Shown one piece after another: positions 33,385 to 60,620 of a stretch of DNA of 64,000 bases; position 1 is the first letter of the stretch; every line of letters starts with the position of its first letter. A program made the translations under genes and the position numbers. Source of the DNA: Dimorphilus gyrociliatus (lineage: Eukaryota > Animalia > Annelida). Location: positions 248,001-312,000 of the forward strand of contig CAJFCJ010000025.1 in the NCBI GenBank assembly GCA_904063045.1, written 5' to 3'. The notes beneath the pieces are model-generated. The model was not told the DNA's origin and made no database searches. It saw only the letters and a list, made by a program, of their open reading frames with translations.

Positions 33385-36300
33385 AGGAAAGGGTGGATCA
33401 TAAATAGAAAAGCGAATAGAAAAAGAGAAGATGGAAGGGTGATAAAGCATATATAAAACGACACGTGTGAAAAAAAAATTAGACGCCCACCAATATCGAA
33501 ATATAGATATATAAACGGCTCGAATTGCTTCAAGGGACTGCTGTGTCCATATGATCATTAATCACGTAGCAGTGGCTTATAATTATCATTATTATACAAG
33601 GTCAAGGTCTGCTATAAGCAATAGACAAATTGTATGAGACGAAAAGAGGAAGAAGTTGGAGACGTATGCTCTACTTATAGGCTATAAAGTCAGCAAAAAT
33701 TCGCTACATTCCTTTAATTAAAAAGTATAAGTAGCCTACTTGCAGAATGCATGACTTGGATCTTAAATATCTTACTGAATAGTTGACTGAGCCTCTTTCA
33801 ATTGAGGTTTTCCTATAGGTCTTTAATGCGTTCTCTCCCTATAGTGTTTTCGTGCAGTCTCTTAATTAATGTTAAATAACGTTTCATCTTTACATAATTA
33901 CAAATTTAAGACCAAGCTACATTTAAAATGTTGACAAATAGGAATAGCAGCAGAATTAAGTATAGGAAAGATAAAGAGCATAGAAATGAGAAAGAGAGTG
34001 TGCAAAGAGAGAAGAGCGAAAAGTTTTCAATCTAATTCCTCACCCAGAATTTGTTTACGTAGTAACGTACGCATCTTAGAGGTGACCCCTAATTGACCGC
34101 CGGCCGCAACCTAAATGATTTAGGCGTCGAACGCTAATCCCAACAGCAAACTACTGCAAAAAGGCGGGTACGTTGGTTAGTGCACGTGTTAATGCACTTT
34201 ACCGCAATATATACAAGAGAAATATTTATCGAATTTCGTGCTATTTATCATCAGTTGGTTTATTTATAAAAGACTGTATATTAAACGGTTAATGTGTAAA
34301 ATGACGTTACACTTTTTCAGTTCCGGCTGCCATTGTTGACGAATTTTCCAGTAACGATGCGACAGTTGATGAAGGGGAAACGGTAGTTCTTTACTGTAAT
34401 GTCACCGGAGTTCCTCGACCAGAAGTCACGTGGTATAAAAAGCCATTTCGCGGTTTGGATATCGACAGGTTTGCTATTTATTATTTTCAAATTAACACTC
34501 GTATTCAAAAAGCCTTACAAAGAAGATGAAATTTTACCAATACTTAATTATGATATGAACTATACACGATAGGCCTATTCTAGTTAATAGTAAGACCAAT
34601 AGACCAATATTAACGCTATTAGGAACTGCTTAATAGACTTGTATACACACGAGAATGTTGTATTTTTTTTTTAAATTTCCGCAATTATCTTAAAATTGGT
34701 TACGTAAAAATAGATACATTTAGTTGGAAGTCTAGGATGAAAAATAGCCTGAAATCTTATAAAGAGTAGAGAGTCAGATTCCAGAAAGTAAGTTTCCAAT
34801 TTTAGGCCAATACGAACTTTATTTAAGGAGGAAAACATAAATTATATATATATATATATATATACATATTTCTATATTTATATATATTAGCATATTAGCG
34901 GATATCAGTCTATATATACTATATATATGTATAATTTATACAGTGTGAAGCTAGAAACAACTAAATATTTCATAATGCTGATTGTTTTAATATAGAAAAC
35001 TTTTGGTCCCTAAAGACTATTGTAAAATTGATTAATAAGATATATTAGAATGTTTTAGTTATAAAAAAAGAAAAGGGAAAAAAGGGAGGGATCATAGAGA
35101 TCATGTTGTACTCTAATAGAAGTTTTAAGATGAAAGAAGATAAGTACAGAATATCTTAGGATATAGAGGGAATAAAGTAATAAATAAAAACTTGGAAATC
35201 TCTCTTCTTCCTCTTTATCATGCAAGACTCGTTAAAACGTTTCCACTTTTCACTGCTAGCTAGTCGTTGTTTGCATATCAAAACAGAAAGGCGTTTAAAT
35301 ATTTACCGTCGCTTATAAACCAAATGCCCATTGATTTTTATAAACGTTTTTTCTTGTAATAATAAAAATATTATGAAATAATTTTACTAGAAAATATTTA
35401 AATAAAAGTTATAGAAGTAATAAACAAAAATTGTTCATTACTTTATCTAAATGTTCAATAAAATAATAATAAAGCAGCCATAAGAATAAACTGCAATACT
35501 GTAAAAAGCTATAAAACTGCTAAGTTAATTTAGGTCTAGTTTTCGTATAGTAAAATGAAATAAATAAGAATCCTTTTTACTAATTTAATTTTTATTTTAT
35601 TATCAAATAAAAATAATAATAAAACGTAATTTTTTATAGGCAAAAATTAGATAAAACAGGCGAAATGCTTGTTATAAAAAATGTCTCACGCTATTGTGAT
35701 GATATCTACTCTTGCGTTGCCGAAAATGGTGTTTCTTCTGCCGTTAGTAGACAAATGAGAGTGACGGTTGAATATCCTCCAGAAGTTACTCTTCCTTCTT
35801 CCAGAATGAGACAAATTCTGGGTAAAGCTACAATGTTTGAATGCAAGGTTAACGCCTTTCCTGTAGGAGAAACCAGTTGGAGGAAATTCGGTGAAAAAAT
35901 ACGAATAAAGGAAGAAGATTCTGGCTTCTCAACAGACGCCTATGAAATAGGTGGAAATACTTGGGTTGTAACGTTAACAATTACCAAGGTCAGACAAACT
36001 GATTATGGAAAATATGAATGCTATTCTAGCAATCCATTGGGTTCAGATTCAGAGACATTGGAATTTTTCCGTAAGTTTTTAATAATAAATATTCATTTTC
36101 CGGATTCTTTATTATTTTATCTTCTATTGTTAAATAAGTTCCAGAGAAGTGATTATTCTTACCTAAGCAAATAAGCAATTTGTCCATATAACGCTTTATA
36201 TAATTCTTATAATTGCATAATAGAATAATACACGTAATAGTTATAATAATAATAATAATTATTAAGTATAGACTAAATGATGCTATTCTTAGACTTACTA

Positions 36301-43800: not shown

Positions 43801-45490
43801 TAAAGGATAATTAACAATTAACCGTAATTATTTGGTCATTAGTACTTAGAAGTAAAATGATTCAAAATGGCTGTTTAATTTCTACCAAAACGTTAAAAAT
43901 ACAAATAAATAATCAATAACGCCATCTGTTTGCCATTGAAGGAAAATAAAATTGTCAAGGCAAAAGTTAAGGACGAATGGAGAGAGGAAAAAGAAGACTT
44001 AGGATATGGCAGGAATGGAGGAAATGATAAAAAATGATCTATTAAAAAGCATTTATGCAAACGTGGAAAAAGTTTTGACTTAATTGAAAAAGTATAGATT
44101 CTTTCAAGTGTAGAGTGTTAGTTCAATATTAAGCGAAACATGGGATTCGACCGTCAATTCATAGTTCGTCATGGGCATAATTCTTCGTCTGTCGAAATAA
44201 ATTTTCCATATTCCCTAAATACCTATTACGTAATAGTAATTTATTCGAAAACCACTTTATGGTGGCTTTTTGTGTTGTGTAGAAAGACCTACATTAATCA
44301 ATAATAAATTAGAAATATTGTTATGCTTATTACAAAGAAAAAATTCTACATAAGCGTACATTATTAAGATATTATTGAAATTCTCGCCTTCCTTAGGGTG
44401 TCATGTCCCTCGGGCTTAGCATTTATCAGCCTAAGATTGCTAATCAAAACAAAATTTCTCCATTCCTTTATCTTACAAATTTTTTACAGATATATTTTAT
44501 AAACCCTGTATTTTTATTAGTTATGACCCAAATTGTTTTAATGCCGAGCATTCTTTCACTTAAAAAGAATCTAGAATAAAAAAATACAACTTACCAATGT
44601 AGAAATCGGCTTCGTAACTTGGTACATCTAAATCTACTTGATTTGGTCCGTGAGCAGCATCTATGATTGTTATAATGGAACGATTTCTACATTCGGTAGT
44701 AAGCTCTTTCAGAGGGAAAAGAATTGATGGAATGGAAGAGATATGATCTATATTATGAAAATAGATTATAAGGAATAATAGTTTCAAAATGATTAAAATA
44801 AATAGCTTTATTCAATTAACCGATTATCGCTACTTTTATTCCGGGATGAGCATCCATATATTCGGTATATTGTCTAACGATTTCCTCTTTAGTTGGGATA
44901 GGGAATTTTATGTCCAAAGAGTGCACTATAGCTCCTACAGTTATTTATTTATTGATTATTAATTATGCAAATCAAGTTTATTAGAGATCTTACCGAGAGT
45001 CTCGCTTTGTTGTTTGGCAATATTTTTGATCGAAGAATAAGAAAAGTTATTCAAAAGAATACCGTCGTTAGCTTGCAATTTTAAAGATTTTAGAGCATCA
45101 TTAACACCTCTTGTTGCATTCTCAACAAAGACAATATCTTCTTTTTCAGCTCTGACAAAGTTAGCTAACTTCTCAAGACTCGTATTGTAGGCTTCATTTC
45201 TCACGTTTCCATTAATATACCATGCATCTGGATGATTTTCCATAATTAATTCGTGCCTATAAAATTGAATCTCATATATTGAAGAAAACTTTTTAACATT
45301 GCAACTTTGATTATTAGCATCCTTGATTAGAGAAGAAAGCAACAAATTGAGAATAAACTTACTGTCTTTTCGCTTCAATAACTTTCTTAGGGGCAGCCCC
45401 GAAAGAACCATTGTTCAAAAGGACATCGTCAGTACTTAAATAAAATTCTTGTTCCTTCAGAGCTTTGCCAAATGCTGGTGGTTGACTCAT
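40831..45490 (-). CDS. Class-V PLP-dependent C-S lyase (hercynylcysteine sulfoxide lyase Egt2 / L-cysteine desulfhydrase / isopenicillin N epimerase-like), about 420 aa
   Basis: complement(join(45490..45363,45256..44994,44934..44821,44747..44595,42629..42424,42154..41996,41936..41859,40992..40831)), phase-consistent (1263 nt). Motifs: LLNNGSFGAAP, FVENATRGVN, IIDHISS, IDAAHG, GNLYKW (Schiff-base Lys), GCAFLW, WQGTRE, YVRISLPCY. Confidence 0.92.
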
Positions 45491-51919: not shown

Positions 51920-54703
51920 TTATAGCTTTGTAGTAGGTTTACTCATTGGCTCGTAAGTAGGTACATAGGCATCCGAATAATAGTTTGTCGCTAACGATAC
52001 TTGATTAATTGTTGACGGTATTTCATTTCTATATTCTTCTTCACCGCATAATTTTAAATTGCAGCTTCTCTTATTAATTTTTAAAATGATGAAAATCAGT
52101 ACCAAAATCAAAATTGTTGGGGAAATATAAAAGATAATTATTCTATAAGTTCTCCTTTCGTGTAAACCAATTATATCTGTGGAATAGAATTACAAAGTTT
52201 TAGGTTTTTACTCAAGAACGCATTCTTCTCCTACGCTGCCTGCAAAAGCCAGTAAGTGCAATAATAAAATTGAATATAGTGCCATCTACCGTACAAACTA
52301 TTGAACAATATTAGCAGCGGTTAGTAAACTGTTACCGATCAGCTACTTCAAAGAAATAACGTTTTCAGGGATTCCTGGTACGAAAGAATTACCATTTTCA
52401 GATAATCTATTGGTGTATTACAGAATTGGTCAGAGGCAAAAACTCAATCAAATTCTAGCGCAACATTGAAAGAAACTTGATGAAATTTATTAGAAGATCT
52501 TTAATTCAACTAAAGTCTTTCTCCATGATCGTAAAGGTGTAGTTAAAATGATACATAGTGAAGATAAGTATCCAGAGAGAGACACAGTATCTATACAAAA
52601 ACATTGGAAAGTTTGGATAGCATTGAGCATATCCTTCAGAATGATGGCAAAAGTTGGTGGAATCCTTACAAAAGATTATGTTTGTTAAGTTCCTGTTTAA
52701 GTACAAATCAAAGTTTCATTTGGAATGCTATGAAAAAGGACCGTAAAGTTACAGATATGGCCGAGAAATATACTAAAAAGATTCTGAGTAGCAAGAACAA
52801 ACATAAAGGTCTTATCAAAATTCTAATAAAACGTGGACTATCTGATCCTAATGCAGCTTCAATATCATCTAATTTATTGGGAGGTGAAATTGCAGAAATC
52901 CCACGCAGCTTATCATTTCTTCTCTATAGTTTGGCAAAACACACTGATAAAAAAAAGTTGGCTGAGAAGATTCATCATGCTCTGAGTAATGAACTTTGAC
53001 ATTTGATAAAATTGATGAAATGAAATAGTTGAAAGCTTGCTTAAAAGAAAATCGTAAAATTTTCCATCCAATCAGTGAAGGTACCACTAGGAAGGTTCCT
53101 GAAGATCTAACCCTCTGCGACGACAAACTTATCCAAACGAACTTCAGCTGTTTGGAATTCTGAAACTATTTCAAAGAGTACTGAATATCATATCTTCCTA
53201 AACCAGACAAATTTTTACCAGAAAGATGGCTTAGAATTGGCGATGACTCGGATGTTTTACACTCTTTGGTTCTGATAAACGAATGTGTAGTGGGAAGCAA
53301 GAAATTTATATGGCAGTGGTGAAATTACTTTACGCCTTCAGAATTGAAGATGGCGTCAACTTAAAACAGTTATTGATTTTTTTTTAAAATCAGATCGTCA
53401 ACTAAATTTCAGATTTATCGACAAAAGAAGATAAAAAGTTTTACTAAAAGAAAAAACTTGATACACTCTCTATTGTTGAAAAAAGAGAAACTAATCATTA
53501 TACTAATTCAATGAGAAATTAACAACTATTTTTAATGTAATTCAATGTCAAATAAAACCCAAAAAAACTTAAAGGGCGTCACTTTGATGAAATAAGCTAA
53601 AAAAAACAAACTCAAAACATATCAACTCACCATTTTTTGCGGTAGTTATATGGTAATCATATTTATTCATAAATGAACTAATCGAAATAGAATATGTCAT
53701 ATATTAAAAGTATTACATGAATAGGAACATGTTATATTACCTATCAGCTGTAAATTTGAATTGATTAATGGGATTATTAGTGGTTGAAGGTAAACAAGTC
53801 ATACTGTCATTTAATACAAGCAATCTACTTAAAATGCACATTAATTTCCCCACGGAGTAGCATAACTTCTTTATTCTGTTATAATTACTTGTACATTTAT
53901 TACTTTCTTCGTCGATAATACACATATTATCGGTCTTTAATAATTTAAAGCGATCTTTACATATTACCCTTCCATCTCTTAAACAATGAGTATCTTCTGT
54001 AAAGTAGCCCATACACCTACAGTTGTCACCGTAATACTGGATATTATTTCGAGTTGTACAAAAAATCTTTAATTATTTTTATAAAATTATTAATAAAGTC
54101 ATAATAATAGGAATTTGATTTATCAACTTTATATGATATAATGATAAATGTATCCATGAACATAAGTATCTTCCGTGATTTTGACCTTCTTTGGTATCTT
54201 AAAGGATGAATTTTATAAATAGTTTCCCACGATTCGCCATTTAATTTCGTGCTAAAAAGGAATTAGTTAATTAACTATTTATCATAATTAATTAAGCACT
54301 CATATATTACTTTAATGTGTCTAATCGAAATTTTAAGAATAATTCCCTATGACTTTCAGTTTCAATACGAAACGGACCATGTATTGTATCGAATTCCGAA
54401 TTAAAATCAATAACTGTTCCATAAGTTCCTATGGTTCCATTCGAATTGAAAAGCGGTTGACAACTTCGAGTATTCGACATGAAAGATGAACAAACATGAA
54501 AGGCGTTTAAACATATTTTATTTTTCGGTACTGTACAAGAGTAAATAAATATTTAGTTTATAAATATCTAAAAATAGCAAACCTTTTTGACATCCAAATC
54601 TTGATTCACTTGATATTAACTTAACAATATTTAATTCAACAGTATACATTGATGCATTTAATTTAATTAAGGTAAAAAAATAAAGATAAGCTATAATCGT
54701 CAT
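51920..54703 (-). CDS. Divergent Delta/Serrate (DSL)-like type I membrane protein: signal peptide, C2/MNNL, two DSL-like modules, TM and short tail, no EGF repeats (about 362 aa)
   Basis: complement(join(54703..54583,54530..54311,54251..54128,54066..53741,53677..53631,53596..53569,52142..51920)), phase-consistent (1089 nt). Signal MTIIAYLYFFTLIKLNA; MNNL-like VELNIVKL..CLNAFHVC..ISYKIFC; DSL-like C..YYGDNCRC..HCLRDGRVIC..C; TM IIIFYISPTILILVLIFIIL followed by KINKR; ends PTTKL*. The two small stalk exons are the least certain part (one intron is only 34 nt, or 49 nt with the alternative acceptor at 53582). Confidence 0.75.
52279..52291 (-). promoter_or_regulatory. CTCF-like motif (reverse complement cggtagatggcac)
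   Basis: TAGATGGCAC core, immediately 5' of the CYP pseudogene. Confidence 0.35.
52340..53360 (+). pseudogene. Mitochondrial-clan cytochrome P450 pseudogene, intronless, nested antisense in the Delta-like last intron
   Basis: Fragments read TFSGIPGTKELPF, SEDKYPER, NDGKSWW, SFLLYSLAKH (I-helix), MK*LKACLKE (TAG at 53026-53028 in the K-helix), PDKFLPERWLR and FGSDKRMCSG (heme motif, about 53265-53294). Several in-frame stops and frameshifts. Confidence 0.88.
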
Positions 54704-55406: not shown

Positions 55407-58400
55407 CTAGGATAGATAGGACATTAACTTTCTAACAGCATTAGAAAGATCGCATGATTCGAAAATAATTAGTCCTGTTGCATTTGTTACGGATAAAACT
55501 GCCAGCAAAGCCAGGGGAGATGAAATACCGTAGGCTATTACACAGTCAAAAGAATCGTTGGACATCATAATATCATCTACTAAACCAACTGTTATTGAGC
55601 GTTTACTTTCAATTTCATCATTTTTATTACTGATAGACTTGATGTTAATCATTAAGCCGAGATGCTTTATTATATCTGAAATGATGTTGTCATTTTCTGT
55701 GGCGAAGATAATCTTTTTGCCGTTGGACGATAACTCATACAATATCAAAATCAAATACGCTAACCTCTCTTCTACAGACGTTACTAAATTTACATAAGAA
55801 TTAATTGGTGGAATATCTGGATGACAGCAAGTAGAGTATTTTTCTTCACCCATTATTAATCTATTCAAGAAGTTATTACCAGTTCGAGGTAAGAGTTTCA
55901 AACTAGTTCTTATCCCTCTTACTCGAACTGGTCTAGAGAGAAATTCTATGCAGGAAACGCCACTATCCAAATGGCCATTTGATACTTTAAATTGAACAGT
56001 CATCAATTCCCCGTCTTCCATGACGTTGTCGACAAATCCATGACAAACTGACAGACCGTTGACTATGCAAACTAAATCATAACCATCTCGTTTGACGTCA
56101 CTAGCCGAAACTATAGGCAGACAACGGTCCAAACACCATTTTTTTAGTACAGTAATTTTAGCCTCATTTTTTCCAATTACAGTGACGGGAATTCGTCTGA
56201 CAAGAGCGGAAATACTAGAACGCTTTGTCACTGCTTCTCTGGCTCCTAGCTCGTCCACAAATTTCAATAATTTATTTGAAAAATATTCTATTGTCCCAGT
56301 TTTTGGTTCAGATTCAATTTTTTCAACAAAACATGAGCCAGGAGCTGATAAATGTTCAATGCATACATGAATAGATGGTGTTATTTTAACAAGTTGTATC
56401 TTTAAATCGGGTAAGAAAGATTCAGTAAATCTTAACTGGACGGTAAAAACAGATCCTGATAGTATTACCGCACTAAAGCTAATTGGATCAGAACAATCCT
56501 CTCCATCCACTACAACATCGTCAACGGATACTGTACGAGCACGTTCATCGTATTTCGCAACAGCAGCTTTAGCCTCAGAGAGGACATTCATGACTTTTCC
56601 TCTGTCCTCTCCTCTACCAACAATCGAATATATTAACTTCCAGTATAAATTACCTGGTAAAATAACCATATTCAAAATTGGATTTATCTCAAGTAAATTT
56701 CCTGCTCGAGGCTTTAGCCTCTGGGATTTGAAATCGAACACACGTTTATTCCACTTTAATAGACGTCTTCCGACTGCTATTTCTGTCATATCTAACACTC
56801 CAAGATGATCTAGTTCAATATAGTATTCTTGTTTATGAACATAGAATACTAAACCATTATTATCCAATCTAACGATAGTTGCTGATGCTAAGACAGAATT
56901 ATTTGGAGATCGAAATCTTTCCCTACAAAATTTATATGTTTTCAAATTTATAAGTGAGCTAGTCGCTGCGCTACATAATTCTTCAAAGTTCAAAGAATTA
57001 TCAGCATTATTAAAAATTCTTTGAACGCAAACGTCAAAATAATTACTACATGGCCTCGTACAACTTGTAATATTATTTACTCCATATTTTTCATTCCAAG
57101 TAATAGTATTGTCACCCGAAATGTAAAATTGTGGAACAGCAGTCTTTGCAAATTGACAGTAAGCGTAACAAGAAGTTGGGATATTTTCAATGTTCATTAT
57201 ATCTGTCAGTAAAAAGTCGTTACGTTGAAAAGTTTTCTTCCAAGCTTGCCTTTCTACATAAACAATATCCATTTTTTCCCGATTATTTCCCAAGCATTTA
57301 CAAATTGATTCACACCGACAAACCAGTCCTTGAGGTAACAAAGAGCGTTTTAAAACAATACAATGGGGTAACAAATTTGAAAATGTATGTCGTAACCGCT
57401 CATTGTCACTAGACCTTGGTTGAATAAGACGTGGAATATTTTTACCCATTTTTAAGACATAAATATTTACGGCAATCTCCAATTCTTCAACAAGTAAATT
57501 TCGTCTTTGATTTATTACAGAATTTCCCAGGCGGTTAAATCTCCAATGATCTGCAATCTTTTATAAGGAAAATTAAAAAACTTACAAGTACTAAAACAAA
57601 AGATATCAAACTTTATAATACTCTGGAGCAATAGACTCGCAGATGGTATCAATACAACAAACTGTTTTCTTATCAACGTCCATTCTTATAATTTCAAATG
57701 TTTTGTGATCTATTATAAACTCAAAGCTGAAGCAGAAAATCCGTTTGCCATTTGTAAAAGTAAAATATTCTTCAACTAAATTCCTAGGTACAATGTAGCG
57801 ATTCTCGGCCGTCATAAATAAAGTCCTAGCATAGACATCTAATTCCGAATGAGGGGGTATACACAAAGAAACGTCTGGCACGTGTAAAGTTAAAGAGTAA
57901 TCTGAAGCAAATTCCCTAAAAGAAATGGCTAATTGCCCATCAAGGGAACTATAACCAACTACAGCCTTGCTATCTTTATCAATTTGAAATTTTGGCTGAG
58001 ATTGTAAATTGTAATTTATGAAGAATAACTCATCTAGTAAATTTAACTGATCAGAAGTTGTTTCAGGTGATTTTAAAGTTCCCACTACAATTCCAATATA
58101 ATTACTAATATCGTCTTTCTCAAAAAAGCCCACACATCTGACGTAAAATAACATATTCTTTTGCCAAGGAACGTATTCTTTAAAAAATATTTTACCCGAT
58201 ATCATTATATCGAAAACAGCCACCTGTTCAGAAGATAAATTATAAAAAACGAGCTTAATTTATTAGAAATATTTTATTTCTAAAAGATTAAGATTATCTT
58301 ACCTCGCTAGGTGAATTTATATATTTGTCAAGTTGAAGTAATCGTATTCCAGGTACTTTAAATGGTTGAGCCATAGCAAATTGATTATCCTTCGATAACT

Positions 58401-60620
58401 GACAGACATATGTGGGAAGATTAGCAGTTCTATAGCCTTTAATAATACTAATGACTTCGCAACGATCTTCTTCTAATTTTTTTACTTTTGCAATATCTCC
58501 TATATTCCTCAACCTTTTAGGATTATTTATCTTCAAAATGGAAAAAGAATCATCAAAAGGAATCGCCCGAATCGATCCAAATTGATCCATATCTATTATC
58601 GCTGATATCCCCCTGTCGTTTTCACAGGGAATATCTTGTACCATAGGATAATCTTCGCTGTTATTAAGAACTCTTTCGTTTTCTTTTTGATCGTTAATAA
58701 ATTGAAAGTCCTCTTTAACATTACTATTTAAAATCAACTTTCCACAGTCGTTCTTAAGAACTTTAACATGAGAAAGTAAATCAGATACGCTTTTTAAATA
58801 GTAAATACAATGACGATCGGATCTTCGAAGGCATTCTGTGACTATTTTATCATTATCACTTTCTACTTCTTTTGTACTGTTTAGTGATATTTTAATAAAT
58901 TCATTAAAATTAATTCCTTCGTTGCTCAACATTAAAATCCAAATTTTCTTTTCTAACTCTGAGTGAGCCATTTGACAATCGAAACCATAAGGACATGGTA
59001 CGTTAAACACATACATTTTTTGGGCTATATCTAACTGGCAGGTTGTACTATACATGTAACTTTCACACATGCCTACTTTGTGATTAATTTTCACTTGATT
59101 AGGTAAATTTCGTATGACTGTTAAGCAATGACTATCTTGCATCAGATGACCTAGAGTATTAAGCAAAAAATAAGTGAATAATTAATAAAAATAAAGTATT
59201 CGACAGAATTAACTTAATAAAATAACCTAGAAATTCAATTTACTAACCTAAAACAATATTAGAATTCCAATTATGTTTATTATGACAATATAGATGATCT
59301 AGCTCGCTTTGGGAACTTATTATATTAGATTTTAAGCACAATGCGCAAAGAAGAGCGAATTTTCCAGGATATTCCTTAAGAACTTTGGCAACTTGTAATG
59401 TTCTTCCATCACCAATAGGGGTAGGAAGAGATCTTGGCGATTGTATGGGTAAAATTGGTATATTACTACTTTTCCTTTCGAAATTTGGTAATTTCCTTCG
59501 AAATCCTTCTGATTGTTGAATGATAAATTTGTTAATATCGAATTCGCCTTGCTTTTCAAAACTCCATAATTCTCTTTCTGCTCGAGAATGTGCAAAGCTA
59601 CATCTTTCTATTCCTACACTACAAACGCCTTGTCCAGTAGCTTCGTGGCATAATACATATCGGCCATTAAATTGTCCATTGTCTTTTCGTTCCCTAATAG
59701 CTATCCATCTCAAAGATAAAGTGTTTTGTTCTTTAGCATCCTTCTTGTCAATTACATATAAGACATTTTGATTACATCTGTGAGAATTATTTAACAGAAT
59801 AGAGCATGATTCACAACCTATTCGAAAAAGTGACGTTGGCTCCAAAGGGAACGAAATTGGGCCACAAATCTCTTGAGATAGATTTTCAGGGTTTTTTCTG
59901 TCTTGTTGAACAAAGGTGGAACCATTAAATGATGTCTTTGATTGTGGCGTAACGAATCCTGGGACGTAGTTTTTCTCATTGTCCGTTTCATCTTGCAGTT
60001 TTAAGGAAGGTAGTGGCTGACCTAGAATATCAAAAATGTATTAAATATTAAACTAAATTAATCACATGATTAAAGAAAGAACTGAAGACTTACCGTTATA
60101 ATATCGTTTGACATCACGAAGTACATCCTGAATTCTTAAAAGGCCTTTTCGTTCTTGATTCCAAAAAAAAATCTCAACATGCGAGTGAGCAAAAGTGCAT
60201 TCATTTTCTCCCACTATACATTCTTTTTTATTCTCATAATGCTTGCAAATTAAATACGATCCTTTATGATCCTGCAAAAGAAAAGAAATACATTTTGGAT
60301 ATTTGGTATTATAATATTAAGAAAGAGAGAGATTTTTGCTATTAAAAATCCATTAATATATAGTTTTACAGAAAAGGCAAGATTAACAGTACAATAAAAA
60401 GTACCAAGAAAAGATTAGGTCTTATTTTGTACCATTCTCCATTACATCCCTTTCTTCTGACTATTAAGAAGGCTCTGCTACAGTCGTGCTCCATGTTTTC
60501 ATAAAATTTAACGCCTCCACTTCCTGGTTTAGTTCTTACAAAACATTTCTTACAGGCCAACTTCCAGTTATAATCGTGAAAACTATCAGGTAACTTAATC
60601 GAATGTTGCAGGTGCACAAC
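55407..60620 (-). CDS. HELZ2: Highly divergent HELZ2-like protein (three ZC3H7-type CCCH modules, cold-shock domains, degenerate RNB, S1, truncated degenerate SF1 helicase), at least 1590 aa; 5' end incomplete
   Basis: complement(join(60620..60405,60271..60094,60021..59248,59150..58303,58223..57612,57557..55407)), phase-consistent; the last intron uses an AAG acceptor and is less certain. CCCH fingers CKHY..C..CTFAHS, CHEA..C..CSFAHS and CPYGFDCQMAHS. RNB-like LHVPDVS..SELDVYAR and ITSCTRPCSNYFDVCVQRIF. HELZ2-typical QLVKITPSIHVCIEHLSAPGSCF. The symbol indicates family resemblance, not proven orthology. Confidence 0.85.

Follow-up and report, generated by a model that had tools for sequence, protein, structure and literature searches.

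Canonical Notch ligands use a pulling force on their receptor, and in Caenorhabditis elegans DSL-1 and some other DSL proteins are secreted. The DSL domain itself has been described as a module of about 50 residues with six cysteines that are conserved and the motif YYG, and genes have been predicted in Nematostella that consist of DSL domains only, or of an MNLL domain with three DSL domains (PMC2770060). Reduced 'Delta-like' and 'DSL-like' proteins have been reported from Platynereis, Helobdella and Lottia (PMC5356439). C. elegans has ten DSL-domain proteins without a DOS motif, signalling reportedly needs no more of APX-1 than its N-terminus with the DSL domain, a 'DSL-only' protein has been proposed as a competitor of canonical ligands, and DLK1 occurs in a soluble and a membrane-bound isoform (PMC2504490). 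The literature already contains secreted DSL ligands and MNLL/DSL genes without EGF repeats, and the claim of an undescribed architecture, made in a sequence-only reading of the locus analysed below, was too strong in view of the MNLL+DSL-only and DSL-only genes of Nematostella (PMC2770060) and the reduced proteins of annelids and molluscs (PMC5356439).

We analysed this locus in a 64,000-nucleotide stretch of Dimorphilus gyrociliatus DNA (the window, 30% GC). That reading had described a membrane-anchored, EGF-less, Notch-ligand-like protein with a signal peptide, a C2/MNNL-like domain, a DSL-like module, a stalk, a transmembrane (TM) helix and a PDZ-type tail. The main practical result of the present work is a corrected gene model with four exons, a secreted product and a cytochrome P450 relic downstream.

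Results

A Four-Exon Gene with Three Micro-Introns

The gene lies on the minus strand and starts with the ATG at 54703, the first in-frame ATG downstream of in-frame stops, from which the reading frame can be carried across four exons (54703-53737). An 892-nt transcript contig of depth 41.5 from a public run covers 54636-54583, 54530-54311, 54251-54128 and 54066-53573, and each of its three joints backs a micro-intron with GT..AG ends on the gene strand; as the joints skip 52, 59 and 61 nt in this manner, the run, whose kind is unrecorded, was taken to behave as RNA. Joined together, the four exons make up 795 nt, that is 264 codons and a stop. The small four-exon gene is real, expressed, and spliced exactly at the three contig joints.

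Exon 1 (54583-54703, minus strand, as are all features of the gene) encodes residues 1-40 plus one base and contains the ATG, the signal-peptide-like residues 1-18 and the start of the N-terminal domain. The contig covers 54636-54583 of this exon and leaves its 5' 67 nt (54703-54637), ATG included, outside, so that both start codon and signal peptide are deduced from the frame being open. After intron 1 (54531-54582, 52 nt, GT..AG; joint 54530/54583, contig depth 41.5), exon 2 (54311-54530), established by contig and frame, continues the N-terminal domain with Cys47, Cys54 and Cys64 and the motif C-x3-F-x-V-C. Intron 2 (54252-54310, 59 nt, GT..AG; joint 54251/54311) is followed by exon 3 (54128-54251), likewise established by contig and frame, which completes the domain with residues 114-155 and closes on ...ISYK. 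Intron 3 (54067-54127, 61 nt, GT..AG, phase 0; joint 54066/54128) sits two residues ahead of the first cysteine of a six-cysteine module that is held entirely in exon 4 (53920-54060; residues 158-204, cysteine spacing 12-1-9-7-12). The same exon encodes the C-terminal 60 residues and the TAA stop (53737-53919; Cys 213, 224, 232 and 246, ending ...TADR) and runs on into a 3' untranslated stretch (53573-53736), which belongs to the collinear contig and features an AATAAA at about 53667-53662.

The published median intron of the Dimorphilus genome is 66 bp, with splicing adapted to short introns (PMC7854359), and the 52-61-nt introns of this gene agree with that median (PMC7854359). By the same token, a last intron of 1.6 kb such as that implied by the membrane-anchored gene model would be atypical in this genome.

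The surroundings of the gene contain further open frames. A large gene lies directly upstream on the same strand (55407-59845), with some 700 nt between it and the start codon at 54703, and has long open exons of 691, 205, 290 and 200 aa. Farther away in the window, a 169-aa open frame on the plus strand (35665-36174) features two immunoglobulin-like patterns (Y-x-C ... G-x-Y-x-C) and probably represents one exon of a gene of the Ig superfamily, and a 150-aa open frame on the minus strand (44959-45411) looks, by eye, like the N-terminal region of an enzyme of the class V aminotransferase or cysteine-desulfurase type.

Features of the Encoded Protein

The 264-residue product contains 14 cysteines in all, three N-x-S/T sequons and a single tryptophan. 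Its N-terminus is hydrophobic and signal-peptide-like (residues 3-13, KD11 2.3), as the sequence-only reading had proposed, and is followed by an N-terminal domain of about 139 residues with four cysteines (38, 47, 54 and 64). Next comes a 47-residue module, residues 158-204, with six cysteines (158, 171, 173, 183, 191 and 204) and a YYG-x2-C motif, and the last 60 residues after this module carry four cysteines only (213, 224, 232 and 246). A hydropathy scan of the whole 264-residue product found no TM-grade segment, the maximum KD19 being 1.55. The absence of EGF repeats noted previously holds: Pfam finds no EGF family match on exon 4, and the transcript contains no further exon.

Motif-Level Similarity to the Receptor-Binding Region of Notch Ligands

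At 47 residues, with six cysteines and a YYG, the module at residues 158-204 agrees with the verbal definition of a DSL domain (PMC2770060). A [YF][YF]G-x2-C motif with at least six cysteines nearby arose in 157 of 200,000 composition-preserving shuffles, in a test that was designed post hoc. Along the protein, the landmarks are V-E-L-x-I immediately behind the signal peptide, C-x3-F-x-V-C, G-E-S-W, SY-K-I-x-C, YYG-D-N-C and four further cysteines, an order that we take to be that of the ligands DLL1 and DLL4, and the N-terminal domain of about 139 residues is presumably of the right size for the C2 domain of these ligands. The 12-1-9-7-12 spacing of the module departs, on the other hand, from what we take to be the canonical DSL cysteine spacing; the GW-x-G motif that we would expect in a DSL domain is missing, and the presumed counterpart of RDD-x-FGH, a motif that contacts Notch in solved complexes, is reduced to a loose D..H. 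Overall, the motif-level resemblance to the receptor-binding end of a Notch ligand is real, with homology unproven, and we consider it slightly more probable than not that the protein descends from the N-terminus of a ligand.

Statistical searches bear on this question with unequal power. For Pfam, five in-frame exon pieces were each scanned separately at E<=10, with HMMER filters that discard most matches above E of about 0.1, and no MNNL, DSL or EGF match was returned from any of the five. The DSL profile (PF01414) was unmatched at this threshold on exon 4, a piece of 109 aa that holds the whole six-cysteine module except the preceding strand; this test is fair, since no intron interrupts the module. 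The MNNL profile (PF07657) was unmatched on exons 1, 2 and 3 scanned singly, which is a weak test because the region is split by two introns over three exons and was read piecewise. Of the two ligand domains proposed from sequence alone, a four-cysteine N-terminal domain and a six-cysteine YYG module do exist, and neither is recognised by its family profile on the exons scanned.

Comparison with known structures followed the same pattern. A phmmer search of exons 4 and 2 against all PDB chains (E<=10) returned no Jagged or Delta-like (DLL) chain. The best PDB match, CLEC-2, has E=0.36 over 46 residues only and was set aside as chance; a C-type lectin domain was likewise rejected, in that no match extends over the approximately 120-aa CTLD and the protein has one tryptophan in total, as against the tryptophan-containing core motifs of that fold. 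A single-sequence AlphaFold2 model of exon 4 alone has a mean pLDDT of 34 and is unusable. As run on exon pieces, the profile and PDB searches gave the ligand assignment no MNNL, DSL or Jagged/DLL match, an outcome that the sequence-only reading had itself named as speaking against it.

Broader searches were also carried out for relatives of any kind. HMMER with exon 4 against 1.84 billion representative sequences found no relative and returned three long repeat proteins only, which were discarded as spurious in that they score via repeated NFCT-type units and have no meaningful Pfam family; the library gave no self match either, so the proteins of this genome seem to be absent from it. A word search with the DSL-like part yielded no candidate sharing three words, a metagenome scan gave 78 pattern matches of which none was confirmed, and feature searches of the ESM Atlas returned either nothing or generic small Cys-rich, EGF-like or Dumpy-like clusters, all below 0.9.

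These results give some weight to a reading in which the gene encodes a lineage-restricted orphan, a secreted Cys-rich protein devoid of Notch-ligand ancestry, whose YYG/six-cysteine and N-terminal motifs arose by chance. In the form in which they were run, all statistical homology tests are negative, the language-model features lead to generic Cys-rich neighbours only, and neither the DSL cysteine spacing nor the Notch-contact motifs are kept. Against chance stands the fact that a number of landmarks follow one another as in the ligands and are spaced from the signal peptide as expected, and that YYGDNC after SY-K-I-x-C is unlikely to arise from composition alone. We regard an orphan origin as unlikely, if deserving of serious consideration.

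The 3' End of the Gene and a Putative Transmembrane Exon

The splice junction 53569>52142, given in the sequence-only reading, cannot be right: exon 4 is separated by stop codons from 53569, a position that simply marks the end of a small unrelated ORF. The sole in-frame join to the TM/tail ORF leads from a donor at 53741|GT to an acceptor at AG|52142. Used in this way, it would make the product a membrane protein of type I, some 337 residues long, with exon 4 spliced to 52142-51920 over a 1,598-nt intron and the read-through form reduced to an intron-retention by-product or a soluble isoform. We consider this model rather improbable.

The TM/tail ORF (51920-52142, minus strand), read from the genomic sequence only, is stop-free after its AG acceptor and in frame with the donor at 53741. 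Its 73 codons after the acceptor encode a strong helix of 22 hydrophobic residues (KD19 3.0), followed by the basic residues K-x-N-K-R and a roughly 50-residue tail. By their look, donor (AG|GTAATA) and acceptor (TTATAG|A) equal the confirmed sites in quality, and joining them preserves the frame; the codon score of the ORF, 0.07 per codon, is similar to that of the confirmed exons 1-3. The same score ranks about 41st among the 179 ORFs of the window that run for 60 codons or more without a stop, however, so that a downstream ORF of this kind is not rare, and I/L/F-rich hydrophobic stretches would be expected to come easily from DNA of 30% GC.

The transcript contig, for its part, ignores the donor at 53741. 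It is collinear with the genome from 54066 to 53573, crosses the donor unbroken at depth 41.5, and reads ...TADR followed by TAA (53739-53737), the stop of the expressed form lying inside the consensus-like and unused donor AG|GTAATA (53737-53741, minus strand). No contig of the public run falls on 52147-51800, though contigs of depth 3.8-5 were kept immediately beside it, and the putative intron contains a transcribed P450 relic on the opposite strand. As the contig reads through 53741 into a stop and the TM/tail ORF has no RNA coverage, the transcript-supported product is secreted rather than membrane-bound. Neither the stalk with its TM anchor nor the PDZ-type tail of the earlier description survives in the only transcript evidence, where translation stops at 53739-53737 and the ORF at 52142-51920 is without RNA. 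Assembled contigs demonstrate the presence of transcripts and not their absence, and some transcripts may still, though rather improbably, join the ORF to the gene as a minor or stage-specific TM isoform. Retention of the donor-like site AG|GTAATA is in itself sufficient to yield a soluble product. The TM/tail ORF may be ancestral, may belong to a minor isoform or may be a chance ORF.

A Cytochrome P450 Relic between Exon 4 and the Putative Exon

The supposed intron of 1,598 nt contains a cytochrome P450 relic (52148-53449, plus strand), which lies between exon 4 and the TM ORF, outside the gene and convergent with it, so that the TM ORF is found on the far side of the relic from exon 4. Pfam matches the p450 family on 52568-52996 with E=3.9e-4 and 19.7 bits, under the cut-off of 22.8. 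By eye, P450 motifs can be followed in order, spread over three frames: a P-G-x-x-x-L-P-type start, an I-helix-like stretch with LAKH..., PERW and an F-G-x-D-x-R-x-C-x-G haem loop. Low-depth RNA contigs on the relic are collinear with the genome, and two of the frame changes fall inside them, which identifies the relic as a transcribed pseudogene. Two other assignments for this interval were rejected, namely a transposon, which the window does not contain a second time and for which terminal repeats of a convincing kind are absent, and designed ankyrin repeats, which were the only PDB matches of an ORF in the 1.6-kb 'intron' and were taken as coincidental.

The TM/tail ORF may be an ancestral last exon severed by the P450 copy. 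A reading of the whole gene as a decaying Delta-like paralogue remnant that lost its 3' exons (EGF, TM) on arrival of the P450 copy and is now transcribed without function is suggested by a gene that ends exactly at a donor-like GTAA, by the pseudogene directly downstream and by a lack of detected relatives that fits fast or neutral drift, but it is very improbable in the face of a 264-codon frame kept intact over four exons in stop-rich DNA of 30% GC, three introns that are all spliced correctly, an even number of cysteines (14) and a contig depth about ten times that of the neighbouring pseudogene.

Discussion

The explanation that we favour, tentatively and at somewhat less than an even chance, is that of a four-exon gene whose secreted 264-residue protein is a very diverged, lineage-specific descendant of the MNNL(C2)-DSL N-terminus of a Delta-type ligand. 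In such a scheme the gene at 54703-53573 (minus strand) would give rise, through its mRNA, to a secreted protein composed of a signal peptide, a four-cysteine domain, a six-cysteine YYG module and a four-cysteine tail. The ancestral step, heavy divergence from the N-terminal MNNL(C2)-DSL part of a Delta-type ligand, would rest on the ordered landmarks described above. Devoid of a membrane anchor or an endocytic tail, a protein of this kind would not be able to pull on Notch; should it bind the receptor, it would for that reason be expected to act as a soluble competitor or modulator and not as an activating ligand, in line with the role put forward for 'DSL-only' proteins (PMC2504490). Recruitment to a function outside Notch signalling may be about as likely, given that the Notch-contact motifs are degraded.

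A more far-reaching version of the same idea would place the gene in a fast-evolving, lineage-specific family of EGF-less MNNL-DSL proteins with soluble and tethered members in a miniature annelid; at this gene, retaining or splicing an unusually long last intron would choose between the two forms, and the family's products would tune Notch as soluble or cis competitors; we regard this as speculative and quite improbable. At present, the locus is best described as encoding a secreted orphan that is expressed and whose motifs are suggestive. If both homology and Notch binding were true, a spiralian would naturally possess a soluble protein of 'C2+DSL only' type, which would bear on what portion of a ligand suffices for binding and on the role of soluble decoys in shaping Notch signalling; it might further be a sign that a family has expanded in a genome that is noted otherwise for the loss of genes.

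Among known systems, the vertebrate proteins DLL3 and DLK1/DLK2 offer a functional parallel: they are partial or diverged relatives of the ligands, and their effect on Notch is inhibition, not activation. They differ in what has been preserved: DLL3 keeps its EGF repeats and TM, whereas DLK1/2 are EGF-only and lack a DSL domain. The DSL proteins of C. elegans resemble the present protein as stripped-down ligands, yet Notch binding of the latter would be hypothetical, and the nematode proteins, unlike it, keep, as far as is known, a Pfam-recognisable DSL domain and at least one EGF repeat.

Reduced lophotrochozoan proteins such as Dl-like1-3 and DSL-like1-3 of Platynereis are lineage-specific and of uncertain origin, as the Dimorphilus protein would be; they combine a signal peptide with an MNLL/DSL-type N-terminus, of which the Dimorphilus protein has a putative counterpart, and have lost EGF repeats and the ATEV tail (PMC5356439). 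These proteins were nevertheless found by MNLL and DSL domains that can be recognised, and they retain a TM and some of the EGF repeats (PMC5356439), whereas the protein described here has no EGF repeat, a TM without transcript support and domains left unmatched by the profiles on the exons scanned. The Nematostella genes, finally, are likewise EGF-less, and are built from the N-terminal modules of ligands (PMC2770060). They are cnidarian predictions with a profile-recognisable and often repeated DSL domain (PMC2770060), in contrast to the present gene, which encodes a single degenerate module and is confirmed by a transcript.
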